From assembly GCA_047495785.1 (NCBI GenBank), contig JBLDXI010000018.1, forward strand, positions 1 to 64,000: a DNA stretch of 64,000 nt, written 5' to 3'. The notes beneath the pieces are model-generated. The model was not told where the DNA came from, made no database searches, and saw only the letters and a program-made list of their open reading frames with translations. This stretch comes from Lepidodermella squamata (Eukaryota; Animalia; Gastrotricha). Shown here in pieces: positions 25,383 to 63,888 of this stretch. Both the position numbers and the translations under genes were made by a program. The stretch's first letter is position 1. Every line of letters begins with the position of its first letter.

Positions 25383-26036
25383 ATGCTGGCTTTAGAAATC
25401 TTTCTAATTCTATCCTTTGCAAGCTCAAGTTTAGCGGCTGGCGACCCTGCAGCTACGCTAGCCTGGGCCGACGAATATTGGGACTGTCTTTATGTGGATT
25501 GTTCAGTTCGTGTCCCAGCTGGAACGCCAGCGAATAACACATTCGAATGCGCAGAGTTTGTCGCCCGGTCTCTCGCAGCCGGCGGGTATTTCCCGGGTCT
25601 TGGACCGCTCGATTCCCTCAACTCGTACTGGAACTACAAGATCAATGGCGAAAAGTACTGCTTGACATGCCCGAGTAAGCACGGACCAAATTTCGTGACT
25701 GTGAAGAAAGGATTCGCCGAGGCTTTGTCTGCCCTCGGATGGCAGGTTTGCGAGGCCTGTCAGCCCGGCACTTGCGAGTATAACGTATCGCGTACGATGA
25801 TCAATGGCACGACTGTGATTGTCGATGAGTACTGCACTGGTCAAACTTGTGATTTCGCCGCTTCAGAGAGCTGCATCGATGTCGCGAGTGTGGTTCTTGT
25901 AGGTGGCATGAAGCATGTCGCAATCGGAGTTGGGCCTGGTCTTCTCAGTGCTCACAATGTGGCTAGGTACCACGTTGACTACAGCATCTACAAAAAGCGA
26001 GGCTACAACGTTGTTTTCAAGCCGCCAGCAAACTAA
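25383..26036 (+). CDS. Secreted Amidase_6/NlpC-P60-like papain-fold putative amidase, copy 1 (intronless)
   Basis: Signal peptide; WADEYW; ECAEFVARSLAAGGY (catalytic Cys); KHVAIGVGPGLLSAHN (His, His). Confidence 0.75.
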   Translation: MLALEIFLILSFASSSLAAGDPAATLAWADEYWDCLYVDCSVRVPAGTPANNTFECAEFVARSLAAGGYFPGLGPLDSLNSYWNYKINGEKYCLTCPSKHGPNFVTVKKGFAEALSALGWQVCEACQPGTCEYNVSRTMINGTTVIVDEYCTGQTCDFAASESCIDVASVVLVGGMKHVAIGVGPGLLSAHNVARYHVDYSIYKKRGYNVVFKPPAN

Positions 26037-26276
26037 TATGAGTTTCAAGACAATCGACAATCCATTATTATTATTATATAAAACAAGGATTGAGGTATTT
26101 GGATGGGATGGGTAAATTTGGATGGGAGTTAAAATTTAAGAATTCATTAAACTGGAATGATCGTTTGATGCCTTTTCACTTGTTCAAGTAATTTTGATCG
26201 ATTGGATTTGTTTTCCCAGCCTTTATTTCAATGCTAGTTGTTAGTCTTTCGAAATTCGAAAATTCAGCGAGCGTGA

Positions 26277-26416
26277 CAGTGCGCGAAGTAGGATCCCCGA
26301 ACTAGGGGGTATTTTCGGGCCCAAATTTCATGACCCCTGCGGTTTTTTTTATTTTTCCCTTTTGCCTTGCGAGCTGCAGGTAAGATACCATCCGTACTTC
26401 GCTACTTTGCGCACTG
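26277..26416. mobile_element. hAT-type MITE, 140 bp
   Basis: TIRs CAGTGCGCGAAGTAG / CTACTTTGCGCACTG; perfect 8-bp TSD GAGCGTGA (26269-26276 and 26417-26424). Confidence 0.85.
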
Positions 26417-26643
26417 GAGCGTGATCTGCGAAAGTGTTTACTTCAATGGTAACAGCATTTCATAGTCTCAACGAAAAGGCAACTGGCAGTTGACATCATT
26501 TGAAAATTTAACTTTCCTTTTTCAATTTCATCTTCAAGCTACTTAGCTTTTCGAGACCGCAGGCAAGGATGAATGAAGTTTGACTTTATTTTTCACAACA
26601 ATTTATGTTTGCTACTACATGGCACCTCAAACTTGCTTCTGTA

Positions 26644-29600
26644 TCACAATCCATTGTAAGGACTCTGAGCATTAATTGGATGATGACCACTAAATTGTAT
26701 CGGTCCGAGGTTCGAATTGGGACCTTTCGGATTCGCATACCAATTATTGGATCCAACTCCAACTGTCGAAGTCCGACGATGCATAGTAGCTCCATGCACA
26801 GGTGCTACTTTCTGCTGGCTTTTTGATTTCTTTTTCTTACAGCAACAGTAGGCTGTTACTCCAATCACAATGCCTAGAACTACAACACCTCCAACTACGG
26901 AACCAATGATAATTGTTGTTGTGGAGTCTGGAGTACCGCCATTATTGTTGTTGCTAGATGAAGTCTGTTCCACATAACCATCCTCGCCTAGGCAAGGGTT
27001 GTTTGATGGAATACAGCTATTCACATCGGCAGTGTAGCCCAAATCAGCAGATAGAGCCTTATCAAAATCTGGATCAGAAATGACTGAGCTGAAATCAGCC
27101 TGGCTTATCGAAACGCCTTCCGATGCAGCTCGTTTCCTCCTGGAAGATTTCATAACTCCGCCAGCCTCGCAAAATTTAGTGGACGATGATTTGTTGATAA
27201 CGATCGAAACCCTGAAACAGCAACCGTTTGCCTTCTTCGAAGTATTAGCGAAGTTTGAGTCAATCAAATCATCTGCATCGACGTAGATGAAGCTCGGAGA
27301 TTGTTGCATCGTGTAACCTGGGCAGCATTTCGAGTAATTCGCAGCGCATATCGTGTTGAGTCTCTTAGCCAGATTAACTTTGATGGCCTTCCTCGCCTTG
27401 AAATAGCCATCGATTGTTGGAACAGGGCTAAGGAGTAGCTCGACACCCTGTTTCATCTCGTCAGTTGTCGGAGTACATCGAATCCCGGTGCCACATTGTT
27501 GGTACTCTTTCGAACCATCAGATTTTATTCTCCACTGAAGCCCGATGCTACAATTTGAGGTACAGGGCGACCAGGTTAAGACTGACATACCGTTTGAGGG
27601 TGGCATGAGCTTTGTAAGATAGCTATCGCCGCCGGTGTATCTATCAATTGAACCAGTGGAAAGGTCCGTTAGAGATGAAGTGCCTTGGAAAGTTACACTT
27701 GTAGCTGCCGTGCAATTCCAAACGCCGACAGAGTAAACATCGACTGTCGGAGTGGCTGGGTTCGCTATGAAACCTGATGAAACTATGCCCAACAACATGT
27801 CCGAGCGTGTCAAGTCTAGATTATGGTTCTTTTTCAGGTTGAAAATGCGCGAGCAGATGTTTGTTCCGAATCTGCAAATGTCAATCTTGATTTCTCCTCC
27901 GCGGACTCTGATCTGCCATAGCGATTTAGTTCTCAGAAATGAAAGAACGAAAATCCGATCGCCGATGAAACATTCTTCTAGGCTATTGCCTGTCGGTAGG
28001 CATTGAGGAGGAGTATCAGGAGTTGCACTCAAAGATTCGTTAATGAAAGCTACATAGCCCACTGCATTTAGCGTATCCGAGAACGATAAAGATACAATCA
28101 ATCCTGAGAGTAGGCAAAATGAGATTGTTACAAGTCTTGTGACAGTTGAACCTAACCTCCTTTAGGAGCGACGGTCACTCCCGTAAAATATTCCGTGCCG
28201 GTCTGATACTTGCCAGAGCTATCAGGCCGAAAGATCGCTGCTCGTTTGGCCAGGTGGAACATGATGGCTCCTGGTGATGAGGTAACTGTTGCACTCACCA
28301 CAAACTCCACGTATAAATCATTCGAAGCCAAGATCTGGAAAAACAGAGTAAATTCATATGTGAAATGTTTCAGAATATCATACTTCGTTGGTCCATATTG
28401 CCCCAGTTCCCCATCCCGATGTGGTTAGTCTCAAAGCATCCTGGGTTGCGCTGTTGTATTCTTTATCTTGTTGAGTGTAGTAAGCCCAATAGCTCGTAAT
28501 ATCCGTCATTTTTTGAAATGACAACCTCGGAACAAAACCGCGATAGCACTGCAAATTCCGAGGCTGAATCTAAAAAAATAAAATTATTAATATATTTTTT
28601 TTAATTAATAAAATGAATCAATCAATAAAGGATTATTCTATAGCTAGCCATGATAGAGAAATGAAATTTCCCCCCGATCTGAAACCCCGAGCGAGTTTGG
28701 CGCAGCCAAACGAGTCGAGGGGATCAGAGAACAAATCTTTGCCTCGAAGAAGCCACTCAAATCGGTCGCCTTCCAGCTGGGTTCGCACAGAAATCAATGC
28801 ATCAACATCGCGACTGACTGAAGACTGACAATAATAGAAACCATCCGCTCGCTGCAACATGGTACCCAGGTCGCGGCGGAAAATAATCCAAGGATTTGGG
28901 TCAATTTTGCCGGTCGAAGATTCGCCGAGAAATCAGTCATTGTCGCCTCTAACGTTGCTATGGCTAGTCGCTGAATTTCTGTAGCTGCTCAAAGCCGCGA
29001 ATTCGAGGAGGAAACCGGATCTGCATCGCGACGGCTACCAGCAAGAGATTTCGACGACCTCGTTTTGCCTCATTTGTCAAATTGTTGTTTTTGCACGTGA
29101 AATTGCTTTCAAGTAAAATTGAGGTTTTTGCTTTTTCTGTGACTTTCCTACGATTCTCGAGAAAATAGGTTTTATGGGGGTTTTGAGGCTAATTCTGAGC
29201 AAAATGCTGCCCAAATTTATGGCAGTTTCATGCCATAGAGAAATTATTGGTTGTCATAGAGAAATTCATTGTAGCCATAGAGAAATCAAATTTCCCAGTG
29301 GCAAAATTTTACCATGCGCATGTTGGAATAATAGGAAAAATAGAAGGCCTCCCAGCTACTTTTTGAAATCATCGGCTCAAACTCACAGAAGAAGGAGCTG
29401 CAGTGGAAGTTTGCCCACAGCTCCACGTTTTGACAGAGATCAAATCAGTGTAAGCAAGACCTTGGAGTAAACTAGCAGAGATCGTCAGAAATGTATCCAA
29501 GCTACGAAACGCCGACTGAAATGAACTAGGCAGGGTGTTATTACTCCAAATTTGCTGGCATGTTGTTGTATTGACAACACAAGCTGCAAGTGATATGTTT

Positions 29601-30307
29601 CTCTGTTGAACTCGCAGTTTCCAAACAGAGACTTTGCCATTTATGTATGAGCTAACAAACGCATCGCCACCGACGTAACACCACTCGAATGAGCCGCATT
29701 TGCCGTCCGCAAACTGGCTCAGAATTTTGGCACTGTCAGTGTTCGGCGCGACCCAGCCTCCGAACACACGTCGAGCAGGCGGAGAAATGAAAATGGCCAA
29801 TCCTACGAAGGATACGCCAGATTTTAACGCTGACAAGTCGGGTGATCGGAATTACCTAGAAAAGAACCATCCTGTCCATAATATGCATCACTCTGTGGGG
29901 TGTTGGGGGTTATGAATATCGCGAATCCTTGATTAATCGTTGCATCGTTGAAAGCTCCAATAGAAAATGTTATCTCAGCATAAAAGTCATCCAGGATGAA
30001 AGGCTATATTGAGACGAATTCAATTTCTGTGTTCAAAACCTGGCTTCATTTCTGTTACCTTTTTGCCGAGGACAGTAGTCGCGCTTAAAACGCTCGAATT
30101 AGTGGTAAAAGTTACAGCGCCGCTGTTACGAGGGGAATTTGTGTAAGTTGCTCCAGGTCCTTGAACAACGCTCCAATCGCTTGCCGCAGAATTGAAGTCC
30201 GTAAAAGAGTACTGAGACTGGAAAACAGCGTTCGAGCATGTCGTGTCTTGTGAAATGACACTGGGCAAATGAAGAACTGATAGTATCGAGAGAATGAAAA
30301 ATGCCAT
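26644..30307 (-). CDS. Intact host type I membrane receptor-like protein (signal peptide, two beta-rich lectin-like repeats, TSP1-like, SEA-like with RRKR, TM, Cys-rich juxtamembrane, cytoplasmic tail); 6 exons
   Basis: ATG 30307 MAFFILSILSVLHLPSVISQ. Introns 30004-30058, 29803-29855, 28570-29386 and two short ones near 28335-28383 and 28104-28157 splice in frame. Long last exon contains WSPCTSNCSIGLQWR and TM IIIGSVVGGVVVLGIVIGVTAYCCCKKKK. Confidence 0.8.
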
Positions 30308-31386
30308 GCTCGAATGGTACTTTTGATTCTCATGCCCCCCAAATCTTCCAGATAGGTGGCTCATGTTCGGCTGCGTCTATAAGCGTAGTCCATCTGTTTT
30401 TATACAGCGTGTGATCAATAGGGCGCTATGCCTCTGCGAGCATTCGTTCGAGTATTCTTATCGCATTCTTCGTGTGCATTATTTATTACGTTGTATTCAA
30501 ACATTCTGATGCGCTGAAAAGTAACCAGGCGTTGTAGCAACGTTATGTAAACTTGCAACATTGAGCTGCCAAATTACAAGATCGCGGTAGAAGCACTCAG
30601 TCGAGGCTTCTCAGATACGAAAATACAGTATCTCACCCCAACCGTTAGCGGATTAATTGAAAACTCATACCACAGATTTCGACCACAGATTCATACAGGG
30701 ATCCTCGAGCTGCCAGGGATGGAAAAAAAATTCTGCTGTATTTACCAAAATTACTAGTTTTTTGGCGAATAACCGAGCGAAGCGAGAAAAGTTTCAGGAC
30801 TTTTCACTAAAACACGCGCCAGAACCTCTCACAATTGAAGAAAAAGTTTGATAAATTCTCATTTTGTCGGGGGGAATGAGAGTATCGTACCCCCAGTTCA
30901 CAAGGCGAAATTACCCCCCAGGTTCAAGGATCCTACTTCGCGCACTGGTCTGGCCCGGCCGAGCTGGGGGGATGATCCCCCCCATCCCCCCTGAAAGTCG
31001 CACACTGGATTCAACAATTGCAATGAACAATGAAAGTTGTTATTTTTCCTCCTCCATGGTTGGCTTGTGGTGGTGTTATTTAATTATTTAAATTGGCATA
31101 ATCGTTATACCGTTCGGTTTAGGGAGGGTGACGATCAGCGGTCGCGAGGGCAGCCGTTTATCACGTCTGTGAAGAGTCTGCTTTTAGCTGAAGATTCATA
31201 ATTTTCAATCGAATTCGCGAGCAAACGCCACTTGTCTCGATCTCGCGCAGCTGTAAGTGATATTTCCCAGTCATTTTCAGGTGTTAAGAACCATTGCATT
31301 CAGGATTTATTCATAATTCACAATTCACCGGTTAATCTAGAAACTTTCAGAGCAAAGTTCTTCCTTACCAACCTTTTGTCACTAAC

Positions 31387-32310
31387 TTAAAATGCCTTCC
31401 AGCTACCATTCCCGGCGCAAGTCAAATTCACAGCGATATTTACGTTTAAATTGTTCGGCCCCAGGAGAGAAACCGGGCAAGTAACATTCGCTCCAACTGG
31501 GAAATCACTGCCAATAAAACCAACAGGCGAAGAACACTGGAACCCGGCTAAAACTGGCAAGCCCTTACAACTAGTATTAGGCGCCGAAATCTGGAGCGAG
31601 GTGGATCGACACATCGGTTTCGAGGACCAAGTGCCAGCTGAAGAAGTGCAGAAAATCGGAGATTGACCAACAAGTGCAAAGCCGCCGAAACAGTAACATT
31701 GAACCGGCCAGCCTCGTCCACCAGCGAATTCATGCAGCAAACAATTCGCATTGTCCGGCATCGAATCAGGCCATGTTGGCTCGCAAGTGCCATTAGCGAT
31801 TTTAGGAATCGAATTTTTACAAGACAACGGGACTGGCATCGAATTGCGCTGGTTGCACGTGGAAGTATACGGATCGTCCTCGAGCGGAGGGGTTGTCATA
31901 GGAGTTGTTGTTGAATCAATTTGACGGCAAGTTGGCAATCGCGTCCAACTGCCGCTGGTCGATGTGCAAAATGCGTTGGCACCATAGGGCCCGTTTTCAA
32001 GCACGAACCCTTCAAAACAGCGGCATCTCACTGGCCAACCTCTTCCAGCTGCTATTTCGTGAAGAAGACAGTTGGCATTGTCTGGTTTGTCCGTCCACCA
32101 CGGCTCGCAAAGTCCTCCGACGATTTTAGGCAGAGTCTCTCTGCAAGCTTGAGGTACAGCCATTGAATTTTGCGGATTGCATAACGAGGCAGTAGTCGAT
32201 CGATAATTTTGGCGGTAAGTTGATGTTCTAGGAGTTGTATCCGTTGCTTGGCCTTTGATTTTTGACAGAGAAAGCAAAAGCAAAACGGTGACTTGCAAAA
32301 GGTGTATCAT
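31387..32310 (-). CDS. Secreted protein with two tandem Cys-rich sushi/CCP-like repeats and a partial third (intronless)
   Basis: Signal peptide; two copies of CN..NSM.VP..C...PKI..G.CEP.W...PDNANCLLHE.A.GRGWPV.C.CF.GF.L....FCTS..G.W...P.CR. Confidence 0.75.
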   Translation of the reverse strand: MIHLLQVTVLLLLSLSKIKGQATDTTPRTSTYRQNYRSTTASLCNPQNSMAVPQACRETLPKIVGGLCEPWWTDKPDNANCLLHEIAAGRGWPVRCRCFEGFVLENGPYGANAFCTSTSGSWTRLPTCRQIDSTTTPMTTPPLEDDPYTSTCNQRNSMPVPLSCKNSIPKIANGTCEPTWPDSMPDNANCLLHEFAGGRGWPVQCYCFGGFALVGQSPIFCTSSAGTWSSKPMCRSTSLQISAPNTSCKGLPVLAGFQCSSPVGFIGSDFPVGANVTCPVSLLGPNNLNVNIAVNLTCAGNGSWKAF

Positions 32311-33096
32311 GTTTATTTTTGTGTCTTGTGACGAGTGGCATCGTTTAATTGTCTTTCAGCCATGCCTGCCCACGAATCTACTCAACCGATCCTTCGAGGC
32401 CTAATACATATATGTGTCAGGTGAGAGCCAAAGGAGGAAAAAAGTATTTTGCGTTACGAGGTATAATATGTATATATAAAAGCATGGAGAAGAAATAACC
32501 ATGCGGCATCGTTTCAATAGCTACGAGAGAGTTTGCCACAGATTACAAGCCTTATTAAACAGAAAAAACATCGGAGCATGATTCATAGAAATAGGTGAGT
32601 CGGAAAGGTATCTATTTCTGAATGAAATGTTGATTCCTGTAAACCAGATCCGGCAAATGGAGCGAAACATGAACATGTAACATGGGACTGCTCTTTTTCA
32701 CAGCTTATACATAATTGTAATGTTTCTTCTACCTTTCACCTCCATGTTCTATCATCTCAAATGGCCTCATTTTAGGAACAGCTGCGTACGAATATCATTA
32801 AACAGCATTGCCTTATATGGTAATGTGAAACGTAGTCCGAAGTGCAATTTGCTCACGACAGCTGATTCTCGGAATCTAAATTGTGTGAGAACTTCACTGC
32901 TTTAACCGTTTACTTAGAAAAATCTCGACGCTTCATCGTATCATCTGATCAAATATCGCCGGATGATACGATGCAGATGCCTACGAAAATGACGCTATAT
33001 TCAACACTGTGGGCAAACAAATCACACTTTAATAATTGAACGATTTTTTTCGATTATATTCAATTTCAAGATTTACTTTTCGAGGAGTTTCCTAGG

Positions 33097-33759
33097 ATGA
33101 AATTCGTTCTTGGTTCAATCCTTGCAGCTGTATCTGCGGCAGTTAGCGATGCTCAGGGCGACCCATCGAAAGCACTGCAGTTCGCTCAAGGCTACTGGAA
33201 CTGCTTGACCTTGGATTGCCCGGAGAAAGTGCCTGAAAAGACGCCAGCGAGCGGCTCGCAAATTCAATGCGCCGAATTTGCTGCTCGTGCCCTTGCAAAT
33301 GGAGGCTACTTCCCTGGCCTCAGCGCTTTCGAAACCAACATGAACAAGTGGTGGTACTACAAAATCAACGGCACCGACCACAGCTTGACCAAGCCAAGCC
33401 GCCACGGTCCGAGTTCGAACAGCCCGAGAAACGGCCTGGCTGAAGCGCTGGCGAATCTCGGCTGGACCCTCTGCGATGCGTGCAAACCTGGAACCTGTCG
33501 GGCGAATGTTACAAGGACCAGCATGTTCAACGTAACTTTTGTCGACGATAACTACTGCACTGGTCAAACTTGCGATTTCGTCGGCGTTAAGAAGTGCATT
33601 GACATTGCGAGCGTTGTCTTCGTCGGTGGTCAACTGCGCCACGTTGCTATTGGCGTCGGTCCTGGTCGGTTGAGTGCCCACAACGGGGCACTGCAAGATG
33701 CCGATTACGGCGAATTCAAGAGCATCGGCTACAACGCTGTCTACATGCCACCGAAATAA
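33097..33759 (+). CDS. Secreted Amidase_6/NlpC-P60-like putative amidase, copy 2 (intronless)
   Basis: Signal peptide; QCAEFAARALANGGY; RHVAIGVGPGRLSAHN. Confidence 0.75.
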   Translation: MKFVLGSILAAVSAAVSDAQGDPSKALQFAQGYWNCLTLDCPEKVPEKTPASGSQIQCAEFAARALANGGYFPGLSAFETNMNKWWYYKINGTDHSLTKPSRHGPSSNSPRNGLAEALANLGWTLCDACKPGTCRANVTRTSMFNVTFVDDNYCTGQTCDFVGVKKCIDIASVVFVGGQLRHVAIGVGPGRLSAHNGALQDADYGEFKSIGYNAVYMPPK

Positions 33760-35512
33760 CCTGCACTTCGAATGTAACGCTTCACTTTAATTAACTTCAA
33801 GGTTCAAGGGGTAACTTGATTTACTCGTTTCCATTTGAGATTTCGGGTTCAAGTAATGCAATTATACCTAAATAAATAAATGGCAGGCTTTCTCTTCATT
33901 TTTCTGCCGTTTTGGTAAAATATTCTAAAAGCATGTTACATGAATCACGAGGATCAGAGAACTTTTGATATTTCACGCCCGAAATTCGAACATAATTTTC
34001 TTCGATTAAGTGGAGAAACGCAACGTTCTGACATTGAGAAAAATACTTCCGCGATACACACTTAGTCGCATCCCTTGTATGTTGATTTTCTTGAATATAA
34101 GAAAGTCGAAAGTGTCGGGTAAGCTAGTATAAGTATTTAAGGCTTTAAAAGATACCAGACGAAGGACGAAGTAATCTCTTTAGTATTGGGAGTGTGGTCA
34201 TGGTAATTTCTAGATTGCTGGAATCCTGAACTATGGAAAATGTTCGACAATATGTCAACCATTCAACGTTGGATCTCATTCAACCTGTTTAATGGCTTGG
34301 ATTCCGGTTTAGATCCAACCAAACAGGTTCTATTGGTTCTACAGGAAGAAATCCGCTGATGCTGCGGCTTTGAAATGTTCAGCGTAATCTATTTGTTTTA
34401 TTGATTCTGACGACGAGCCTTTATGCGTTATGCGTAGATTTTCATATCATCTACTACAGCCTATCGCAGTAAAACATATTTCAGCGTGGTTAACATCGTC
34501 AGAGCTACTCAAGTAGAATCAGCTGCCCGGCAACGGTTGAGATATTTCGAAAATAGGTTAAACAGGGAAATTAATTTATGGAGCAAACAATGAAAACACC
34601 CCGTCCCACATTAGGCCAGATGCCAGATTTGATATTCGGGACGAGGACGGTAGTAGTAGATGCTAAGTTAGGACAAGCTGCAGTTTCCTAATTTATATCA
34701 ATAATGATTTGAAACTTTGGCAACAGAGGGTTACTATTATATGCTCTATTCTATGAGCAGCTACGGACACCATCCTATTTAATTACGATTTACAGAAATG
34801 ATAAGAATTTCAATAAACCTTATCATTTTGTACGACTTTACCCTACCATATCCAAAAGTTGAAATACCGTATTTTTTCCTATAGCAGCCCGGGCTACTAA
34901 AATGTCAACCTCAAAATTTTGAAAATTTCAGAAAATAATTGGGGAATCGTTCGTTTTCGATGTTTTCGAACCGACTTGACCCCTCATCTCTGGGTTACTA
35001 TTAGTGGATGAGCTACTATTGGAACAAATACGGTATGTGGCGTCCTCAATGGCCGTTGTGCACCTTTGTAAGATATCACAAGCTATATTTCAGCACTGTG
35101 GTGACGAAATCATGTCAAACCGTTTGAAAGGAGGACGAATTCAAGCTTGATACGGTGGTTGCGGAAGGCAGTAACGGGACAGGGATCATTCAGTGTATAT
35201 AATTTGAATTTATTATTCACTTTCTTTACAGATGTCTCGAATGTTCTAGCAAATTCTTCAATATTATTTAACCTATTTCTCGAAATTTTACGGGCCCCTG
35301 GCCTAATTAAGGCAGCTGAATTTACTCTCAAATCGTAGGTGGAACACGACACGTAATTCAACGGCGCGAGCTAAAGTAAACCCATGTTTAGTTTCAAAAA
35401 CAGCTGAACACGCACATCAGTAACTTAACGAAGATAAGTACGCGATGTAATCATTATCAGCCAAATAAATAGCCGTCTCTTGAACTGTGAAATTCCATAT
35501 TTCTCCTTTACC

Positions 35513-36178
35513 ATGAACTATTTCGCTTCTCTCATTGCCATCGTCGCCCTCGTCGCATCTTGCAACGCAGGCGGTGATCCGGCCAAAACGGTCGAATTCG
35601 CCAACAACTACTGGAACTGCCTAAGTTTGGACTGCCCAACTCGAGTCCCGGAAGGCACACCCGCGAACGGATCAATCTTCCAATGCGCTGAATTCGTAGC
35701 TCGCTCCCTCGCAGCTGGCGGCTACCTGCCCGGTCTATCGCCGCTTGAGACCAACAACAACAAGTGGTGGTACTACAAAATCAACGGAATCGACCACAGT
35801 TTGACCAAGCCAAGCCGCCACGGTCCGAGCTCGAACAACTCCCGCAACGGTTTGGCTGAGGCTCTTGAGAATCTCGGTTGGAAACTGTGCGACGCTTGCA
35901 AGCCTGGCAACTGTGCAGCTAATGTCACCAGGACTAACAAGTTCAACGTTACCTTCGTCGATGCCTGGTACTGCACTGGCCAGACTTGCGACTACGCCAA
36001 TGTTCAGAAGTGCATTGACAAAGCGAGCGTCGCCTTTGTTGGTGGCCAGCTGCAACACGCCACGCTTGGTGTTGGACCCGGCAAGCTGAGTGCCCACAAC
36101 AACGCCCTGAGCAACGGCGACTACAGTAAGTTCAAGTCAATGGGCTACGACGCCGTTTACCTGCCTCCGACTGACTAA
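35513..36178 (+). CDS. Secreted Amidase_6/NlpC-P60-like putative amidase, copy 3 (intronless)
   Basis: Signal peptide MNYFASLIAIVALVASCNAG; QCAEFVARSLAAGGY; QHATLGVGPGKLSAHN. Confidence 0.75.
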   Translation: MNYFASLIAIVALVASCNAGGDPAKTVEFANNYWNCLSLDCPTRVPEGTPANGSIFQCAEFVARSLAAGGYLPGLSPLETNNNKWWYYKINGIDHSLTKPSRHGPSSNNSRNGLAEALENLGWKLCDACKPGNCAANVTRTNKFNVTFVDAWYCTGQTCDYANVQKCIDKASVAFVGGQLQHATLGVGPGKLSAHNNALSNGDYSKFKSMGYDAVYLPPTD

Positions 36179-36929
36179 GCGCTGAAATTCACGGCAAGAT
36201 TCGGTGAAGGCAAAAACAACTCATATACGATTCAACCTGTTTGGGAGGGTAAAACTTCTTGGGGAGTGTTTCACATGATATATGAGACTTGGGAGAATAA
36301 AATTCTGGTTTCAACTTGCAAGAATGTCGTTATATTTTTCGAAGTCCAATATCGCTCACGAAACCAGCTGATGAGAAAATATGGAAATAATCTCAAAGGT
36401 AGACCGTCGGGAGGTTTTTACTTTTTCTCTTTTTCAACTTTGAGAAGCGATAACTCGGTGACGGTGATGGGTAATTAGCTCAGGATATTTTCTGTGGATT
36501 TTTTGTTTTTATGCATTTTTAGGTAACCTTGAAGTAAGAAAGATGATCGCGCAAATTAACCCTGTAGCTTTCATGTTTCCTATTTGAACCTCATGAGCAT
36601 AAAACATACCAAAAATCTTGTTCGCCCCCCTGAACTTTGATATTTCCATTTCATACAGCTGACTTGGATGCCGCTCTACTCTGCAAACATGAAAGAGGTT
36701 TAAAATGTCTCCTGCTAACTTGCCTGGGATAACAGAGCCCTCCACGCCCTCCTACTCGAACTTACGTTCCATTATAAACATTCAGTGACAGAGTGCAGCT
36801 GAGCAAATTAAAACCCCGTGCCTCGGAGCTCTCATAATTAAAATACGATGAAATGTAAATAGAACTCAGATTTAAAGTCGAAAGCTGCGATCCATTTCCA
36901 TTAATTTTTCTCTAAATTCTGAAGATATC

Positions 36930-37595
36930 ATGCAGTTTTTCGCAAGTATTCTACTCTCAGGGATTTTCATGGGAACAATCACTGCTCAGGGTGATCCGGC
37001 TAAAGTTGTCGAGTATGCGCAGAACAACTGGGACTGTTTGACAGTCGATTGCCCTGTTCGCGTGAAGGAAGGAACGCCAGCGAACGCTACCCAAATCCAG
37101 TGCGCTGAATACGCTGCTCGAGCTCTGGCATATGCAGGATATTTCCCTGGCCTCAGTGCTACTGACAACGTAACGAAAATGTGGTACTACAAGATCAACA
37201 AGGTTAGCCACAGCTTGTCTATGCCCAGCAGGCATGGTCCAAGTGCTAGTGGTACGAAAAACGGCCTGGCTGAAGCGCTGGTGAATCTTGGCTGGAAGCT
37301 ATGCGATGCGTGCCAACCGGGAACTTGCCAGGCTAATATGACCAGGACTAATATGTTCAATTTCACATTTTTCGACGACAATTATTGCACTGGCCAATCG
37401 TGCGATTACGTCGGCGTAAAGAAGTGTATTGACAAAGCGAGTGTGGTGTTTGTTGGCTCACAGCTGCGTCATGTTGCAATTGGGGTAGGCCCGGGAAGGG
37501 TGAGCGCCCACAACGGGGCGGTGAATAATTCCGACTACAGCATCTTCAAAGGCATGGGATACACCGCCGTCTACACGCCGCCAGCTGCTAATTAA
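36930..37595 (+). CDS. Secreted Amidase_6/NlpC-P60-like putative amidase, copy 4 (intronless)
   Basis: Signal peptide; QCAEYAARALAYAGY; RHVAIGVGPGRVSAHN. Confidence 0.75.
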   Translation: MQFFASILLSGIFMGTITAQGDPAKVVEYAQNNWDCLTVDCPVRVKEGTPANATQIQCAEYAARALAYAGYFPGLSATDNVTKMWYYKINKVSHSLSMPSRHGPSASGTKNGLAEALVNLGWKLCDACQPGTCQANMTRTNMFNFTFFDDNYCTGQSCDYVGVKKCIDKASVVFVGSQLRHVAIGVGPGRVSAHNGAVNNSDYSIFKGMGYTAVYTPPAAN

Positions 37596-38531
37596 CTGAT
37601 CATGTACTATAACTATACTATATATGACTTATAGTAATGGGTTATCTATCTCTTAATTGATTCTATACAATTCTATGATTCTATGAGGTGGCGGTTTTTC
37701 GGCCCAAGGTCTATCGCTGAGTATCTGAGGTCTATAGCACAGTTGCGTGGAATCCGACGATTCAAGTGAACTCGCCGCCCCTAGATTGCTAATGCAAGGT
37801 TGAAATGCTGGTATCTAGAAATTAAACTCCCGAAAAAAGCAGATGAATGCAAATTGTTATGTGCCAATAGCCAATATAAGAGGCACATAGCTATGTGTCA
37901 ATAGCACACCGTAAAAATTATGAAAAAATAGGAAAAAAGGGGATTCGAACCCTGAGCTGTTGCCACTTGCCACTACACTATCATCCTGTCTAAGATTGGC
38001 TGAAAATGCTTATGTGTATGGTTCTATTGTTAGTCTGTAAATAGAAATGCCGGAAAAGGATGACTACAAGACCTAGCTCTGCTGCGCCGTGGTCTCGCCT
38101 CATGAACCGTCCAGTGCCTCATGGTAGAACACCAGACCAGCAACAAGATTGGTGAACAAAGTCGTGTATACCATTGGTTCACCGAAAATTCCTAATGAAA
38201 ATTGGTGGAGACCTCACCTCGTCATGTTGAGGCAAACAAAGGCGAATGCATCGATTTTCACTGCTGTTCACAAGAAATGTTTGTGGGCAAGGGTGAACAC
38301 GATGTCACCCCTTCGTTCGACAATCTTTGTGCCGCGCAAATGAAAGGAGGCCAATCCTCCATGGTGCCGGTATAGCTCACTATACAAATACTGCAATACA
38401 TCATGAAGGTTAAACACTAAAGTTTCTTTACTTATTAAAATTGCTAATAAAACATCGGCTATATAGGCAGCCCATTTAATTATGTTGCACGCCACAGCCA
38501 ATTAAGTTGGATCAACATTAAAGCTCTCCGC

Positions 38532-38785: not shown

Positions 38786-40996
38786 TTAAATCATTTGCTG
38801 TACATAATATGCGTCAACCCCCGCACTGAGGATAGCGACCAAGCTTGCAGCGCAAACATCCGCCAGCCTGACGTACGCTACAGATTTGTGATTTTCCAAT
38901 CTGTGAATCGACACAGAGTAAGCAATAAACTCATAAAAGCATAGAAAAAGCCCCATGGTAAATTTAAAAGCGATGATGTTGACAAGGTAAACCGTCTCTG
39001 AAGTCTTTGGTATGTTCTCGAACACCAGTGACAGCAGAACTGTAAACGATAGAACCAATGCGACGCTGGTACCAGCTCGATCTGGTGAATCCGGCGGTAA
39101 AACCAGCACGTACAACGAGATGACTGGGAGAAACAAATATGCGACGTAATACTCTGCTCGACGTTTGAATGTGATCGGTAAAATCATTCGAGGCACCGCA
39201 CCACCTCCGGTTTGATTCTCGTAATGAATGCGAGGTGTACCACAGCCCACAAATTTCCAGATATCTGTGTCTCCAATGAATGTCTCTCTAGACGCCAAAT
39301 CAACTTCGAAATGGGTGATGTTGTATGAGATACCAAGGTTGTCCTCGCCTTCGAAGACGATATTGCACTCGAGGGAATCAAATGGGAATTTAGTGAATGA
39401 AAATTCAGCGCAAACAGTTTCCAATCGATTTCTCACCCAAATCGATGATATTCCATTGTTAGCGAATGGCCATGTTATGACTTTTTCGTCGGGATCACTG
39501 GAAAATTACAATCCACAGTTTGGAAATTGAAATGAATGGTTATTCGAATTTGTGAACTTGGAATACTGTTATATTGCCGTGTCAGTTAGACCTCCCTCCC
39601 CACGGAAACTCAATGACTGTAAAACCCCTTTTTCGCAGTGACTTTGAATTCGCGGTCATGCCCTGTCAGGAGTTCGTGCGAGCGGATGCGTGAAATCAAC
39701 TCCAATAACCTAGCAAGTGGTTTTTAGTGAACTTAAGACCTCGCGCGCTGATCTCAATGGTGAATTTCGGATTGAACTGCCGGTTTTTACACCAAAATGA
39801 AGTTCTGGAAACGCTCCTTCCAGTGAATATAGATTCTCACTCTGAAATTGTGATGGTAAAAAGTTTGACGTTCGCAACAACTTTCTTCTTGCACAGCTGG
39901 CATTCGCGCAAAATTTAAGGTGGACGTACAACTTTCTCCCATTACATTTTTCGAGCGAGAAGCCTATATTAAATAGAAAAGCTGCCTGAATTTCATTCTG
40001 GAGTAAAAGCAGGCAAAATGTCGTCAATTTTCCTTTGCCATCAGCGCGCGCGGTCGAAATTCTGTCTCTGCTGTTTGCCAGAGCGCGCAGTTGCTGTTTT
40101 TGCGCGTTCCAATCAGCCAATTGGAGAATTGCAAGTCCATTGTTTTCAAACAACGGTCACAAATCACAGATCAAGACTGCGCGTAGCTTATTGTGTAATA
40201 CTCACAAGCGCGTTGCCGAACTAGCTCCGCCCGGATGGGGTCGAGGGATGCGGTTATCAAAAACGCAAGAATTCAGAGCAAAAAACGCTAACCATGATCT
40301 ACATGCGCTAGAAAACTTGTGTTAATATTTGCACGAATTCTTTCGGCATGAGCAAATTCTCGCTGGGTTTCACTTTTCGCGGATCTTAAATTCGTGGTCC
40401 CTTCATACCGCGAGAATAGCTATAACAATTTTTGGGTGATCTGCCTCAAGCGCCTCACTTGTTTTCCAAATTTTGAAGATTACCTACCTGAATACCGGAG
40501 TTGACATTTTCAGCGGGTTGACATGAACGAGCGGTGGGACCCATTGATACCTCACGGGCTTCACCACGGTCAACTGCTGCAAAAGTCGAGTCTCTATCAG
40601 ATCCCTGCAAAGTGTCTCGTTTTCGAATAGATCTTCGCAATTCGCAACTGGGCACGTCGTTCGCCATTTGGCTTCAATCCACACCAGCAGGGACAGGCTG
40701 TTCAATGTAAAAATTAAAAATCGATAATTAAGTCTTATGCTTATTGGCAAGCACTTACTCTTTACTTACCTTTGGTCGAGGTCATCGATTGCCATAAATC
40801 GAGAGAGGCTGAAAACTATTTCCACCGCGATGGGCCTTTTGCGATAGACCAGCCAATAGTTGGGCAAAGCTGGAGATGAAGCTTCAGGACAGAACTGATC
40901 ATAGGCTTTCTCTAATGAAATCTTGGATAGTTCGGGAGCATTTAAAGCTTCAGATGCGCATATGAATTCAAGAAGCATAAGCGCTGTCACTTTCAT
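38786..40996 (-). CDS. Divergent Cys-loop ligand-gated ion channel subunit, subfamily A copy 1 (3 exons; M1 shortened by about 5 aa)
   Basis: Exons 40996-40770, 40697-40488, 39497-38786; WVPPLVHVN; CAEFSFTKFPFDSLEC; FKRRAEYY; four TM helices; IPKTSE. Confidence 0.8.
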
Positions 40997-41789: not shown

Positions 41790-43260
41790 ATTTATTTATT
41801 TAATTTAAAAACTGCAGTTTCGCGTTGCGCGTGTACACAGTGATTTGTTTTTATATACAGTTTTCAAATATTTACAGGCGTCTCACCGTCGACACACAAG
41901 TTTTTACAATTTCAGGCAACAAGTTTTGTAAAATATAATTTTTAAAAACAGTAATTGAACGAGAGTTAATTATGCATTCTGGTACCTTATTCCATACTTT
42001 GTTAATTCTGTTGCCAATACAAAATCTTCGGGGATCTGAGCGACATTTAGAAGGAACTATGCAGTGTTTCGCCTTTCTAGTGTTAGTAGAATTTTCGAAC
42101 AAAGATGAAAAAGAGACATCAACAAAATTGTGGTAAGCTTTGAAACAAAACAACAAGTCGCGTAAAATTCTACGATGTTCTAATCGTAGTGTACCAGAGT
42201 GTTTGCACGCATCATCGTAGCTCAAGGTTGGAAACACAGCTTTAAGAAATCTTTCTTGTATTTTTTCCAAGTTGTCGATCGTTGTGAGGAAATAGGGGCT
42301 ATACACAGTAGAACAGTAGTCCAGAATCGGCAAAACATAAGTTTTAAAAGCCATTATCTTTAATCGAATGCATCTGAAACTCTTTAAAATAGCAGAGCAT
42401 AGACTTGAGCACCGGTTCATAAGTGTGGCACAATGTTGCGTGAAGCTTAGATCCTTATCAACAACAACGCCTAGGTCTTTAGTAGACTGTACAACGCGAA
42501 TAGGTATGTTATTTATAGTATAGTCTGTCGAGATTTCATCGCTTGCTCCGATTCTCATTACACAACATTTTTCACAATTTATATCGAGACCATTTTCATT
42601 AAAACAAGAAATGATGTTGTCGAGATCTTTTTGCAAAACACATTTGTCTTCATTTTTCACAATCGGTCTGAACACTTTGTTGTCATCAGCGAAAAAAAAT
42701 AAGGGAGACTCGACTTTCGTGTCGATATCGATAGCTATAAGAAATATAATAAATAGAAGCGGGCCAAGAACTGAGCCCTGAGGCACACCTGAGTTCACAT
42801 TTCTCCAACCTGACATACTGTTACCTATTTTAGTTCGGGAATTGCGGTCTAAGAGGTACGACTTTAGCCACGCGAGTAGATTTCCGCATATGTTTAAACT
42901 CTTAAGAGCACTTATTAGCTTGAAAATAGGAACAGAGTCGAAGGCTTTCGCCAAATCAAGGTAGATTATGTCCACGGGTATATTATTATCTCGGTAGAAC
43001 GTGAATTTATTGAGACAGATTAAGAGCAATAGTTCAACATTTCGCTTTTCCAGGAAGCCGAACTGGTTAGGCGGTATCACATTATTTCTATTCAGATACT
43101 CAGTAAGAATATTTTTTATAATTTTTTCTTGCAATTTGCAGATGTTACTGGTAAGACTGATAGGCCGGTAATTTTTAGCTTCCAGCCGAGATCCGCTTTT
43201 CTTGTAGATAGGAATAACATCTGCCACCTTCCAAACGTCTGGTAGCTGACCTGAGAGCAT
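41790..43260 (-). mobile_element. 5'-truncated CR1/L2-group LINE with uninterrupted RT ORF (41872-43260) and (TAAA)n 3' tail
   Basis: NYRPISLTS, QFGF, YLDLAKAFDSV, SGVPQGSVLGPLLF, FADD, KDLGV; ATTTATTTATTT tail at about 41790-41801. Confidence 0.9.
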
Positions 43261-52274: not shown

Positions 52275-53627
52275 ATGCGGATTTCTGAAGCTCTCATAGT
52301 TTTTGCTTGTATGTTAACTGTCCTCACATATCAAGTGTCCAGCAAAAACTACGAACCCGCTGCCATGAGGAAGCTTTTCTTCAAGCTGTGCCCTATTGCT
52401 CTTGCTGAAAATCTACCCGCGGAACATCACCAGCTGATTGGTGATCTGTCAACGCCGATAAACAGCTACCTACAATCGAGTCTCCTTTACATTGAGGATG
52501 TTAGCGATCTTGATATGAGGTATAGGGTGGACAAAATGGATTTATATTTCTCCAGTCTTGAAAACTAGTTAGACTTGTTGTCTTATGATCTGCAAAATCG
52601 GGCATTTTAACTAGAGCTCGCATGTAGAACCGTTCATATATTTGTCTAGTGTGACTGCGATGATGTCAATTCGGATTTTTTGGGAAATTCCGTGCGATCG
52701 TGATATCAGAAACGAGTTGTGGCCTGACTACCAAAAACTCAACAGTACTCACCTGGCAAGAGTTCAATTCGAAGTTCCAGTCGATCGAGTTTGGTGGCCT
52801 GATATGCAGCACTTGAACGCCATTGGCGAATCTCGGCCATTAAGAAAGTAAGTGGCTAACTTTACCAACAAATGAATGCTTATCGCATCCCTTTCAGTGA
52901 GAGATTAATCAAAGTTCGGCCGTTTGTTGGTCCGAAACCAAGGTTTCTGATCTACGCAGTGCGTCCGTTCAAAACTACCTGCTTCTTTTTCAAGTATACA
53001 AAATTTCCCTTCGATGCCTCAACTTGCACGTTCGAGTTTGAGAATGAGAATTTGGCGAATGAAGTAGACTTGAAAGTTGAGTTAATAACGTATGTTGTTC
53101 GTTATTCTCCTCTCCGCAACAACGAAATTTGGGAGTTCGTCGACTTTAACGGATCGCTTTCAAATGTGACGGGCTTTCCACATGCCACGATCAACCTGAC
53201 ACTGAAGAGAAAGCCTCAGTACTACGTTGCGAATGTATTTGTCCCTTCTTCGACTCTGTTTATTTTGCAAATTTCAGCCTTGATCATGGACCCACGACAC
53301 CCTGATCGGCCTAACTTCTGCATAACCGTCAACCTGGCGACTTCAGTCCTTCTTGCACTGGTTGACTCGCTCATCCCACGGACCGCCGATGAAGTTTACC
53401 TGATCAACATCTTAATAAGCTCCAATGTTATCTGCGTCCTGATAACTATTTACGCCTTGGTAACTCTAACTCTCAGCGAGCAGAAACTCGGTAAAATTCG
53501 TCTAAGGAAAGGGAATGATTCAAAAGGTGTGAGACTCTTGAGAATTATCGATGCACTGGTAGCCACTAGCGCTTTTCTTATTTTTTTGGCGATCGTTGTA
53601 TATTATGGTTGCAAGATGCTGGAATGA
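52275..53627 (+). CDS. Divergent Cys-loop LGIC subunit, subfamily B copy 1 (3 exons)
   Basis: Signal peptide; IEDVSDLDMR; WWPDMQHLNA; CFFFKYTKFPFDASTC; LKRKPQYY; four TMs; IPRTAD. Confidence 0.85.
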
Positions 53628-55588: not shown

Positions 55589-56906
55589 TCATGGTCCGTG
55601 AACGATTTTAACCATGTAGTACGCATCGACCGAAGCGCTTAACACAATGACGCTGCTTGCAAAGCAAATATCTGCTATTCTCACGCAGCCGATGGGCCTT
55701 TGATTGGCCAATCGGTGTACAGAAATTGTGTGGGTAATGAACTCATAGAGGCAGAGAACAAGCCCCGTCGTGAATTTGAACGTGACTATGTTGACCAGGT
55801 AAACAGTTTCCGAGGTTTTCGGTATGTTTTCGAATACCAAGGACAGCAGAACTGAGAATGATAGCACTAGGGCGACGCCAATACCAGCTCGATCTGGAGA
55901 ATCAGGCGGCATAATCAGGGTTGAAATTTGAAGGCTAAATAGCGAGATCACCGGCAGAAATAGATTAGCTGCGTAGAACTCGGCTCGTCGTTTGAACTTG
56001 ACCGGGTAAACCAGTCGCGAAGTAACGAAATCGCCTGTTTGATTCGTGAAATTCAAATACGGACTTCCGCAACCCAGAAAACTCCAGACATCTGTATCGC
56101 CGATGAAACTGTCCCGCGACGATACATCGACTCCAAAGATAGGATCAATTGCAAATGTTACGTAGTTGATGCCGTCGTCGCTTTCGAATATTATGTTGCA
56201 TTCCAGCGTGTCGAATGGAAATCTCGCGAAGACGAATTCGGCACAATTCGATTCAAGTCGAAGGGTGATCCAAGCTTCTACGTTATACCCATCTGCAGCA
56301 AACGGGTACATTGTGATCGTGTTATCGAGATCCCTAGTGGAATGGTAAAAGTTGGAAAGTAGACAGGAAAAACGGACGCAGCGTGAATATGATAAGCTGA
56401 AATACCTAAAGAATGCTGGTGAATTTTTCAGTGCGTTGACGTGAGATATGGGCGGAACCCAGAGTGACTTGGTTGGCTTAACCAGCTTCAAATGCTCCAA
56501 ATAGCCTTGCTCTTCTAATGATTCGCATAGTGCTACGTCGCTAAATAGATCATTGCAGTTAGGCACAGGGCAAGTTGTGCTCCACCTCGTCAGTATTAAC
56601 ACTGAAAGTGATAAGCTAAAACGCAGGGAATGAATGATTCCTAATGATACTAATTATCAAGTCGCACCTTTGTTCAAGATCATTGATGCCCATAAAACGA
56701 TAGAGGGTGAATGCGAAAGATACTTCAATGGGTTTTTTTCGCTTGATCAGCCAAAAGTTCGGCAGATTCTCAGAGGAAGCCTCGGGGCAAAATTTGCTGT
56801 AAGCTTCCTCTAGCCACCCGTCATCCCCGGATTTTTCAAACGTTTCCGCACAACCAGAATGGAAGACAAGCGCAAGCAATAAGTTGGGATAAGATAAGAT
56901 TGTCAT
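55589..56906 (-). CDS. Divergent Cys-loop LGIC subunit, subfamily A copy 5 (3 exons; intron 56334-56405 is in-frame and stop-free, so the ORF track reads through it)
   Basis: WVPPISHVNA; CAEFVFARFPFDTLEC; M1-M4. Confidence 0.85.
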
Positions 56907-62115: not shown

Positions 62116-62379
62116 AACTGGGCATTTGAGATGTGAGGTTATTTCCATACCGGAATAATTCAAATTTATTGTAAATCCTTTATACTTGGTGGAGTTTTGT
62201 GAGTTTTGAGAGTCGCTTAGTCAAACAATTGTAAATAAATAATTGTTAAAGTTGCTTGACCGACAATTTTGTATTCGGAAAGGATTGCGAAAGGTAAAAT
62301 TGAAGGCAACGGAAAGGTGGTAATACTGATTTAGGAACCATGAAGCTCAAACAATTCCTAGGCTCAACGCAATTCAAAG

Positions 62380-63888
62380 AGGATAAACCATAGCCTGCAC
62401 ATAGTAAGCATCGACTATGGCTGTTGTGATAACTAGAAATGTCGGCAATACGAACATTTTTCATAGATCCTTTCTTTTTAAGGAGGTGCAATGATGCAGT
62501 GTACGTGATGAACACATAGAAGCACAAAACAAGCCCTGCTACATATTTGAACGCCACAACATGAACGATGTAAACAGCCTCGGATGTTTGGGGTATGCTT
62601 TCATAGACCATGGAAAGCAACATGGAGAACGACAGCACCAAAGCTACGCCAATTGCAGCTCGGCCCGGCGAATCCGGCGGCAAAACTAGGGTTGTGGCTT
62701 GAAGGGTGTACAGCGAAATTAAGGGAAGGAAAAAATTAACAGCGTAATACTCCACGCGGCGTTTAAATTTTTAAATTAAACGCGGGATAGCACCATCAAA
62801 AGTTTGATTTGTCACATTTACATACGCACAACCACAGCCCAGAAACGTCCAGATTTCTGTGTCGCCAACGAATAAATCCCTTGCGGATAGATCGACCTCG
62901 GATGCTCGGAATCGACCTCGAATGCGATGCTGCATTCGTTAGTATCAAAGGGGAATCTGGCGAACGAAAAGTCGCAAGTGTTGTCTAATCGAAGAGTCAC
63001 CCAGGTATGCAGGCCGCCGTCGTAATAGAATGGCCATATGCTGATTTTTCCGTCAGGATTACTAGAAAAAAATAGGTACTGCAATGCCACGTATTCCTTT
63101 GGGATGAATTAAGAGTTTGGTGGGATTTCACCTTAATCATAATAAAAAGCTAAAATGAAAGCGGTTTTTTCGACTAATGTCCTCCTAGGTTCCAGGTCGA
63201 CTAGAGACACCCTGTGGGACAGTCTTCTTACTATAGCAACGAAAGCGTACAGTGAGATTCATTAGGTTTTAGTTTTATGAAGTCAATTGCTAAATTTGTC
63301 ACTAAGGTATAAACCTTTAGCAGTCACACACCTGAACAGCGGCGGTGATGTTATGAAAGCGTTCAGGTGGTATATTGGTGGAACCCAGTGTGCCCTCACA
63401 GGTTTTACCACTTCCAAATCCGGCAGAACGCCATTTTCAGCCAGTATCGTACAAAGTGTTTCGTTGTGAAGCAGGTCTTCGCAGGTCGGTGGTGGGCACG
63501 TTGTGTACCAAGAAGCCATGACTGTACCGAAAAGCGACATGCTAGAAGAACAAGTACGGAAACTGATCACAAAAAAGGCCAAATGTTCAGCTCTATTACC
63601 TCTGTTCAAGTTCATTTTATGCCCATGAATCGATCGAGAATTAGTGACACTTCAACTTCTATAGGAAGATTCTGCTTGATCAGCCAGTAATTGGGCAGAG
63701 TTGGGGATGATGCTTCAGGCTTCAGGGCAGAACTGGGCATAAGTTTCTTGAAGCGAAAAGTCATCACTGGGAATCAACGGGTAATTTGAAGCTTTCGTCG
63801 GAGCTATTAGAGATGTAAAGCTCAGCAATACAATGATTATCATTCCAACGGCTGCTGAAAGATATCCCCAGCGTTTTGCGTGACGCAT
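62380..63888 (-). pseudogene. Cys-loop LGIC subfamily A copy 7, multiply frameshifted
   Basis: 7-bp duplication GCTTCAG at 63712-63725 breaks FCPEASS; further frame breaks near 62890, 62770 and 62440; CDFSFARFPFDTNEC retained. 3' boundary approximate. Confidence 0.75.

Follow-up and report, generated by a model that had tools for sequence, protein, structure and literature searches.

Candidate secreted Amidase_6-like hydrolases in the gastrotrich Lepidodermella squamata and their relatives in other eukaryotes

Four intronless paralogs with predicted signal peptides

The analysis concerns four paralogous genes, designated W1 to W4, that putatively encode secreted enzymes related to the Amidase_6 family. 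They lie on contig JBLDXI010000018.1 of Lepidodermella squamata, within the stretch comprising positions 1-64,000 of the forward strand (64,000 nucleotides; hereafter, the window). The main features of these genes are as follows.

25383..26036, + strand: W1, 217 aa, the earliest-branching copy (ORF, alignment and tree); predicted signal peptide aa 1-18; candidate triad Cys56/His178/His191; insert at aa 123-164 (nt 25749-25874)
33097..33759, + strand: W2, 220 aa; predicted signal peptide aa 1-19; candidate triad Cys58 (33268-33270), His182 (33640-33642) and His195 (33679-33681); insert of 42 aa at 33472..33597 (+)
35513..36178, + strand: W3, 221 aa; predicted signal peptide aa 1-19; candidate triad Cys58/His182/His195; insert at nt 35888-36013 (+)
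36930..37595, + strand: W4, 221 aa; predicted signal peptide aa 1-19; candidate triad Cys58/His181/His194; insert at nt 37302-37427 (+)

Each gene consists of one open reading frame (ORF) running from ATG through stop with no intron, and a tblastn search of the window returned precisely four copies and zero fragments. The encoded proteins share 53-74% pairwise amino-acid identity, and similarity at the DNA level (63-77%) is restricted to the coding regions, ending at the ORF borders. Three elements are invariant in the four proteins: CAE[FY]xAR[AS]LA, H..(I/L)GVGPG..SAHN and, in the insert, C[DE]ACxPGxC...YCTGQxCD...C-ID. Each N-terminus is hydrophobic, with small residues at positions -3 and -1 followed by a conserved x-GDP (SLA/A, SDA/Q, CNA/G and ITA/Q), features which, judged by eye, suggest that the four proteins are secreted. 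The mature proteins contain nine Cys residues in W2-W4 and eleven in W1, which alone presents two extra Cys (YCLTCP). A preliminary description of this DNA had reported four intact, same-strand, intronless paralogs with signal-peptide-like N-termini, and its coordinates, ORFs and motifs were all reproduced here; the motifs that it quoted and the disulfide-rich insert are present and invariant in the alignment of the four copies.

Probable expression and constraint of the four genes

The coding GC content of W1-W4 is 51-55%, versus ~44% locally, and poly(A) signals are found 110-226 nt past the four stop codons. Two sequencing runs provided evidence on these genes: X1, a DNA run, and X2, a second run classified as RNA by the guess of the tool used. 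X1 spans the whole 5.1-kb stretch as a haplotype or strain diverged by 2-3%, and the 15 differences listed between X1 and the window in W3 comprise 13 synonymous and two nonsynonymous changes. Contigs from X2 fall on gene bodies only, with none in intergenic DNA, whereas X1 covers everything. For W2, an X2 contig gives a minimum transcript:

32977..33823, + strand: minimum extent of the W2 transcript, from an unspliced X2 contig, with a 5' untranslated region (UTR) of at least 120 nt and a 3' UTR of at least 64 nt

Over this interval the X2 contig matches the genome colinearly, showing 0 differences and no gap, and W2 is hence devoid of introns; an AATAAA signal lies 112 nt downstream of its stop codon. 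Pieces of X2 contigs were also found inside 35644-36211 for W3 and inside 36974-37655 for W4, and the sequence of W1 is read by the loose end of one X2 contig. These observations indicate that W1-W4 are probably transcribed, the identification of X2 as RNA being a tool's guess backed by the restriction of its contigs to gene bodies.

Comparison among paralogs yielded dN/dS ratios (nonsynonymous to synonymous divergence) of 0.13-0.14 wherever dS could be estimated, the remaining pairs being saturated at synonymous sites. The saturation implies that the duplications are old, and the dN/dS ratios, together with the strain differences in W3, reveal strong purifying constraint on the four genes. 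The earlier proposal of an amplified gene set in an animal genome is thus sustained by the dN/dS ratios and the X2 contigs, and the set can be further described as constrained and probably expressed.

Fold and family assignment

The preliminary description had assigned the proteins to Amidase_6, within the papain-like NlpC/P60-CHAP hydrolases, and had suggested hidden Markov model searches as a check. A Pfam scan of W1-W4 did not return any match to Amidase_6 (PF12671), CHAP or NLPC_P60, with Amidase_6 absent up to an E-value of 1, and an NCBIfam scan did not produce any meaningful match. A word-indexed homolog search with W2 yielded zero matches, W2 itself included; the same type of search using the family alignment yielded at least seven. 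Searches of PDB sequences with profiles A1, A3 and A4 did not return informative matches for the catalytic domain.

An exhaustive profile search identified 106 distant relatives, with a best E-value of 3.7e-20 and none below 1e-30. Among the best 60 of these 106 relatives, 10 match Amidase_6 and three match CHAP, while others carry PG_binding_1, PG_binding_3, LysM or SH3_3 domains. Proteins of a eukaryote type gave the best E-values (1e-20 to 1e-16), and bacterial proteins gave values of 1e-9 or weaker, with members of Amidase_6 being matched by the profile of the window genes at 1e-9 to 1e-7. Against the Pfam gathering cut-off of 23.2 bits for Amidase_6, bacterial relatives scored 23.9-30.8 bits and two further relatives, P0004 and P0049, scored 15 and 22.4 bits; the bacterial-looking relatives hence exceed the curated cut-off, which W1-W4 do not reach. 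A profile-profile comparison with hhalign of the four paralogs and 20 bacterial proteins of the Amidase_6 clade gave a probability of 99.5% and an E-value of 4.2e-22 over 156 columns, which take in the N-terminal helix as well as the Cys and the two His residues, and in which the Cys-rich block appears as an insertion.

Structural comparisons pointed in the same direction. Using features from the ESM protein language model, the nearest models in the Atlas were Amidase_6 clusters (0.92), and a shape search of the Atlas returned Amidase_6 first (TM-score 0.56, 131 residues aligned), versus 108 residues for NLPC_P60. An AlphaFold (AF2) model of mature W2, built with a domain alignment of 68 sequences, reached a mean predicted local distance difference test score (pLDDT) of 92.2 and a predicted TM-score (pTM) of 0.90; a run based on the four sequences alone was unusable (pLDDT 54) and was set aside. 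In a structural search with the W2 model, the best 30 PDB matches were all NlpC/P60 or CHAP peptidoglycan hydrolases, with Z-scores of 8-12.1 and root-mean-square deviations of 2.2-2.7 A across ~105-122 residues. They include a CHAP endolysin (8tw1, Z 12.1), 8er5 (Z 11.1) and NlpC1 of Trichomonas (6bim, Z 10.7), as well as CwlO, LytE, SagA and Tae3 at Z ~10. Foldseek returned the same families with weak E-values.

The predicted structure hence places W1-W4 in the papain-like NlpC/P60-CHAP fold (Pfam clan Peptidase_CA), as had been proposed, the assignment resting on the AF2 model and its best 30 matches. Homology to bona fide Amidase_6 members extends over the whole domain, and the data support W1-W4 as a divergent sister group of Amidase_6 that is not itself a Pfam member. 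The suggested link to this family was accordingly upheld by the profile, ESM feature and structure comparisons, but not by any direct match to the Pfam model.

Relatives in bacteria and eukaryotes

The bacterial relatives that could be named belong to Streptomyces, Kitasatospora and Streptacidiphilus (Actinomycetota) and to Tengunoibacter (Chloroflexota). Named eukaryotic relatives were identified in the amoebozoans Clastostelium, Stenamoeba and Phalansterium and in the jakobid Andalucia (ANDGO_06110), with many further members of the eukaryote type being contigs from soil metatranscriptomes. The eukaryote-type relatives bear signal peptides and a single domain, and share 26-38% identity with W1-W4.

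Two of these relatives were informative on the nature of their source genomes. The protein P0015 (171 aa, a signal peptide followed by the domain, without the insert) is encoded by a single ORF on scaffold L019, a 12.6-kb sequence with a GC content of ~40% from metagenome ENA ERZ23486787, where it is flanked by an LSM (SmD-like) gene and a homeobox gene. Two loci were noted on this scaffold:

L019, 1048-2121, - strand: noted locus
L019, 5001-5516, + strand: noted locus

The homeodomain encoded on L019 matches Nkx2.1 (E 5e-30) and vnd (E 1.6e-29), with other classes at 1e-17 or weaker. NK2-class homeobox genes belong to animals, and the presence of one adjoining P0015 identifies the scaffold as animal DNA, so that a second animal-derived genome carries this hydrolase family. 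The gene for P0007 (L002:2229-2841, +) contains a short intron within the hydrolase domain, exon 1 ending in ...HKHDGK and exon 2 restarting at YDLCWVSSKQG, through which the automatic gene call had read; L002 is GC-rich and harbors a Translin gene upstream of P0007. The contigs of other relatives are eukaryote-like, and that of P0049 contains one single ORF.

Two further sequences deserve separate mention. P0028 (Logan SRR22315509, contig of 2891 nt) is a 437-aa protein that combines TSP1-type repeats, the hydrolase domain and a C-terminal hydrophobic tail; its architecture is eukaryotic and possibly animal, with a membrane or glycosylphosphatidylinositol (GPI) anchor, and it falls in the group nearest to the window clade. 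The branch leading to P0067 (456 aa, L016:303-1673, Logan SRR11558094), on the eukaryote-type side of the tree, is very long. With a GC content of 63% and abutting or overlapping genes, the contig that carries it has a prokaryotic or viral look, and may represent a bacterial lineage near the eukaryotic clade and a clue to the donor.

Phylogeny and origin

A careful IQ-TREE search was performed on 78 rows, 25 of them bacterial, with Streptomyces, Streptacidiphilus and Tengunoibacter represented, after the removal of long branches. The resulting tree splits the bacterial rows from the window and eukaryote-type proteins with support of 100/100, and unites W1-W4 in a clade of their own (100/100), whose stem has a length of 1.34. 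The sister of this clade is P0015 (95/67), followed by P0049 and P0028 (93/75), which places it close to the base of the eukaryote-type proteins. In an approximately unbiased (AU) test, a placement of the window clade outside the other eukaryote-type sequences gave a delta lnL of 3.8 and a p-value of 0.38. A quick tree in which the window clade fell deep within the eukaryotic clade was discarded, as a constrained alternative had a higher likelihood. Window and eukaryote-type proteins also have in common the second Cys of WNC..C, a GVG that follows the first His and the pair PP at the C-terminus, and both lack a short insertion seen in bacterial proteins.

Judged from their sequences, W1-W4 do not come from any sampled bacterial lineage; they are members or sisters of a family of secreted proteins with a patchy occurrence in eukaryotes. 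Since the eukaryotic clade is sister to Amidase_6 enzymes of the Actinomycetota and Chloroflexota, the ultimate origin of the family is probably bacterial. For the animal copies, descent from this eukaryotic lineage would be likelier than acquisition from a bacterial donor of their own, whether by vertical inheritance accompanied by numerous losses or by transfer between eukaryotes. They would subsequently have undergone old duplication and retention under purifying selection.

The main alternative to this history is a direct transfer from a bacterium to the animal, followed by the acquisition of a signal peptide and of the Cys-rich insert and by tandem amplification. Such a transfer would be consistent with the absence of introns, with the long stem of the window clade and with the AU test, which does not reject a position of this clade on the branch between the bacteria and the eukaryote-type proteins. 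Nesting among sequences of the donor domain, the pattern by which a bacteria-to-animal transfer is recognized, is however not seen in the tree: the genes fall within no sampled bacterial lineage and are excluded from the bacteria with 100/100 support. Furthermore, their best profile matches are of the eukaryote type, with bacterial ones weaker, they share derived characters with eukaryotic homologs that already possess signal peptides, and their maximum-likelihood sister is a gene on an animal contig. We thus consider a direct transfer unlikely, a separate transfer from an unsampled donor being possible. The independent bacterial transfer into the animal put forward in the preliminary description is, in that form, not supported, given the exclusion of W1-W4 from the bacterial clade, the characters shared with eukaryotes and the position of P0015. 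The phylogeny that it had proposed as a check recovered a separate bacterial clade and a grouping of the genes with eukaryotes, either inside or beside the eukaryotic clade.

Candidate active site, insert and proposed function

The alignment of 68 sequences revealed little or no variation at Cys39, His163, His176 and Asn177 (in mature W2 numbering). In the AF2 model, Cys39 opens a helix (39-49) and His163 opens a strand (163-169). The spacing between the two His residues of W2, 13 residues, agrees with the Cys-His-His arrangement of canonical NlpC/P60 enzymes. From this conservation and spacing, W2 Cys58, at the N-terminus of the core helix, would act as the nucleophile, with His182 as the general base and His195 in an orienting role. 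According to a published classification, Amidase_6 proteins may do without a full triad, and Tae3 is grouped with this family (PMC10318531).

In all four copies the insert is 42 residues long, six of them Cys, and bears two conserved N-x-S/T sequons. In the model it is located between the helix following the Cys helix and the core strand ahead of the first His, and adopts a small beta-rich sub-domain (mature residues ~104-150) predicted with a pLDDT of 82-84 and informed by four sequences only. No such insert was present among the more than 100 homologs examined, and neither of two metagenome scans recovered a relative that was close or bore the insert; the insert is lineage-specific. Lying beside the core sheet, it would probably reshape or extend the substrate groove, a speculative role. 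In tick Dae2, domestication was followed by divergence of the loops next to the catalytic channel, which broadened the substrate range (10.1101/2020.04.10.036376), and the insert may, speculatively, play a similar part.

The predicted signal peptide would direct these proteins to the secretory pathway, where they are probably N-glycosylated, and approximately four disulfides (five in W1) would confer extracellular stability. By analogy with their relatives, the substrate would most likely be an amide or peptide bond in the stem peptide of bacterial peptidoglycan, and the enzymes would serve to kill or digest bacteria, extracellularly or in the gut. A peptidoglycan-hydrolase function for the secreted W1-W4 proteins can hence be put forward as a well-founded inference from their fold, their relatives and the wall-binding fusions of the latter.

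Proteins with this fold could also act on a substrate other than peptidoglycan, as proteases, transglutaminase-like enzymes or acyl-transferases/amidases targeting host or dietary molecules or another microbial polymer. The clan also holds glutathionylspermidine amidases, transglutaminases and deamidase toxins, which appear in the structure list at Z 6-7, and a large lineage-specific insert could alter specificity. This option is nonetheless rather improbable, given that the best 30 structural matches are all wall hydrolases, that the relatives are repeatedly fused to peptidoglycan-binding modules and that the catalytic residues have been kept. Even less probable, to a marked degree, is a role as non-catalytic secreted binding or recognition proteins (pattern recognition) retaining the fold only, since the Cys and both His residues are invariant in the four copies despite their saturated synonymous divergence.

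Origin and function considered together

The best explanation of the whole, which we hold with somewhat more confidence than doubt, is that W1-W4 encode secreted Amidase_6-like hydrolases that descend from a eukaryotic lineage. Several points weigh against it. With regard to descent, a placement of the window clade outside the eukaryote-type sequences is not rejected (AU p 0.38), the inside placement is moderately supported and the stem is long (1.34); the earlier quick tree search was misleading; and the eukaryote-type clade is composed mostly of environmental contigs, at least one of which (L016) looks prokaryotic. With regard to function, the Pfam Amidase_6, CHAP and NLPC_P60 models do not directly match W1-W4, Amidase_6 is by its own designation a 'putative amidase' family, and a literature search did not return enzymatic evidence on members of the eukaryote-type clade. 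The RNA nature of X2, on which expression depends, is in turn a tool's guess.

Genomic neighborhood

W1-W4 are interleaved with unrelated genes on the opposite strand, on a single contig that bears intron-containing animal genes. The features nearest to them are as follows.

26644..30364, - strand: unrelated, apparently multi-exon host gene between W1 and W2, with no family match
31387-32310, - strand: secreted Cys-rich ORF of 307 aa between W1 and W2, with a weak Sushi-like match only
38786..39436, - strand: exon belonging to a Cys-loop ligand-gated channel gene and lying 1.2 kb past the end of W4

The first of these comprises a piece with a signal peptide (30020-30364), a Cys-containing piece (29369-29836) and a piece with a transmembrane segment followed by a KKKK stop-transfer signal (26644-28101), all on the minus strand. 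These ORF pieces would constitute one gene, with a large protein that is secreted or membrane-bound as its product, the linkage of its exons being suggested by similar ORF pieces. The ORF at 31387-32310 contains two internal repeats of ~115 aa with the pattern C..P..C..LPKI..G.CEP.W.D..PDNANCLLHE.A.GRGWPV.C.CF.GF.L. The channel exon at 38786-39436 begins in mid-protein after a ...ttttccag acceptor site.

A cluster of Cys-loop channel gene pieces, which takes in the exon above, was detected in the window at 38786-40153 (-), 52872-53627 (+), 55589-56602 (-), 58968-59501 (-) and 62246-62755 (-). Their matches to Neur_chan_memb and Neur_chan_LBD are weak and all fall under the Pfam cut-off, and the genes are apparently multi-exon and divergent. 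A retroelement lies downstream of the cluster, with a 462-aa ORF at 41872-43260 (-) matching RVT_1 (E 4.5e-31). Lastly, X1 contig depth rises to thousands at 34781-35122 and 37688-38000, versus ~90 around them, with many alternative joints; these short segments represent high-copy dispersed repeats and are probably small fragments of transposons.

Contamination or mis-assembly of microbial DNA, for which nothing speaks except the missing introns and the absence of close relatives in databases, is not credible and is effectively refuted by the interleaving of W1-W4 with multi-exon animal genes (pentameric ligand-gated ion channels, the Sushi-like gene and the retroelement) on one contig and by the independent coverage of the whole stretch by X1, as well as by an unremarkable GC content and the poly(A) signals downstream of the genes.

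Significance and comparison with known systems

A literature search did not turn up any account of Amidase_6-type enzymes in animals or protists, nor any published description of the eukaryote-type secreted Amidase_6-like clade. Taken jointly, the results tentatively outline an undescribed secreted Amidase_6-like family, common to animals (or to one animal lineage) and deep protists, which might stem from a single entry from bacteria resembling Actinomycetota or Chloroflexota and have moved or persisted among bacterivores as a lysing tool. The animal would have gained a glycosylated, disulfide-locked sub-domain for retargeting and a multigene expansion for defense or digestion. We regard this composite history as plausible without giving it even chances.

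Borrowed bacterial wall-degrading enzymes in eukaryotes make up a small set of examples, though an influential one, of how cross-kingdom gene flow shapes immunity and feeding, and this family, if the above holds, would stand beside Dae, LytFM and TvNlpC as one more independent class of wall hydrolases that eukaryotes have domesticated. The history of W1-W4 points to an older or eukaryote-to-eukaryote route, rarely documented, because it is with homologs from amoebae, a jakobid and a second animal, and not with bacteria, that the animal genes group. The six-Cys insert with its conserved sequons offers a concrete candidate for retargeting after domestication. Should lytic activity be true, the four diverged paralogs would constitute a natural specificity series and a source of stable secreted lysins.

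The closest system by homology is Amidase_6 (PF12671), a putative amidase family of Actinomycetota, Bacillota and Chloroflexota with the same N-terminal helix, C-A-E-F nucleophile motif and His...D/S-A-H-N element. Relative to this family, W1-W4 add the 42-aa six-Cys insert, an extra disulfide pair, the GVG and the C-terminal PP, and are without the short bacterial insertion. Moreover, they are predicted to be secreted single-domain proteins, whereas in bacterial Amidase_6 proteins a membrane anchor or modules that bind the wall are often present. The eukaryote-type clade resembles W1-W4 in its signal peptide and single domain, in its derived characters and in lying on the same side of the 100/100 split; it differs in the absence of the Cys-rich insert, W1-W4 being set apart on their long stem.

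The Dae enzymes, exemplified by tick Dae2 (10.1101/2020.04.10.036376), share the concept of an animal-encoded, bacterial-type, papain-like peptidoglycan amidase with a signal sequence that is used against bacteria, and as an analogy the comparison with Dae drawn in the preliminary description is fair. Dae genes fall inside the diversity of bacterial tae genes, a nesting that W1-W4 do not show among the sampled bacteria. Neither the family profile A3 (E up to 10) nor A4, the profile of the bacterial proteins (E up to 1), matched Tae chains in the PDB, and Tae3 (Z 10.2), Tae4 (Z 6.7) and Tse1/Tae1 are generic structural matches only. The sequence profiles gave no support to an identity with Dae3, which the placing of Tae3 in Amidase_6 by a published classification (PMC10318531) had suggested, and W1-W4 do not appear to be Dae members by sequence.

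LytFM of the house-dust mite (PMC4600878), which is intronless in one mite species, and the NlpC/P60 enzymes of Trichomonas vaginalis (10.1101/320382) are likewise wall hydrolases encoded by eukaryotes and of bacterial ancestry. The TvNlpC structures (PDB 6bim and 8ev5) match the W2 model at Z 10.2-10.7, and no sequence match was found between W1-W4 and LytFM or TvNlpC. Both systems are canonical NLPC_P60 (PF00877), whereas W1-W4 are closer in shape to Amidase_6 (131 versus 108 residues). The concept embodied by W1-W4 is hence known from Dae, LytFM and Trichomonas NlpC, and what is new is the family, the eukaryote-type pattern of its tree and the insert.

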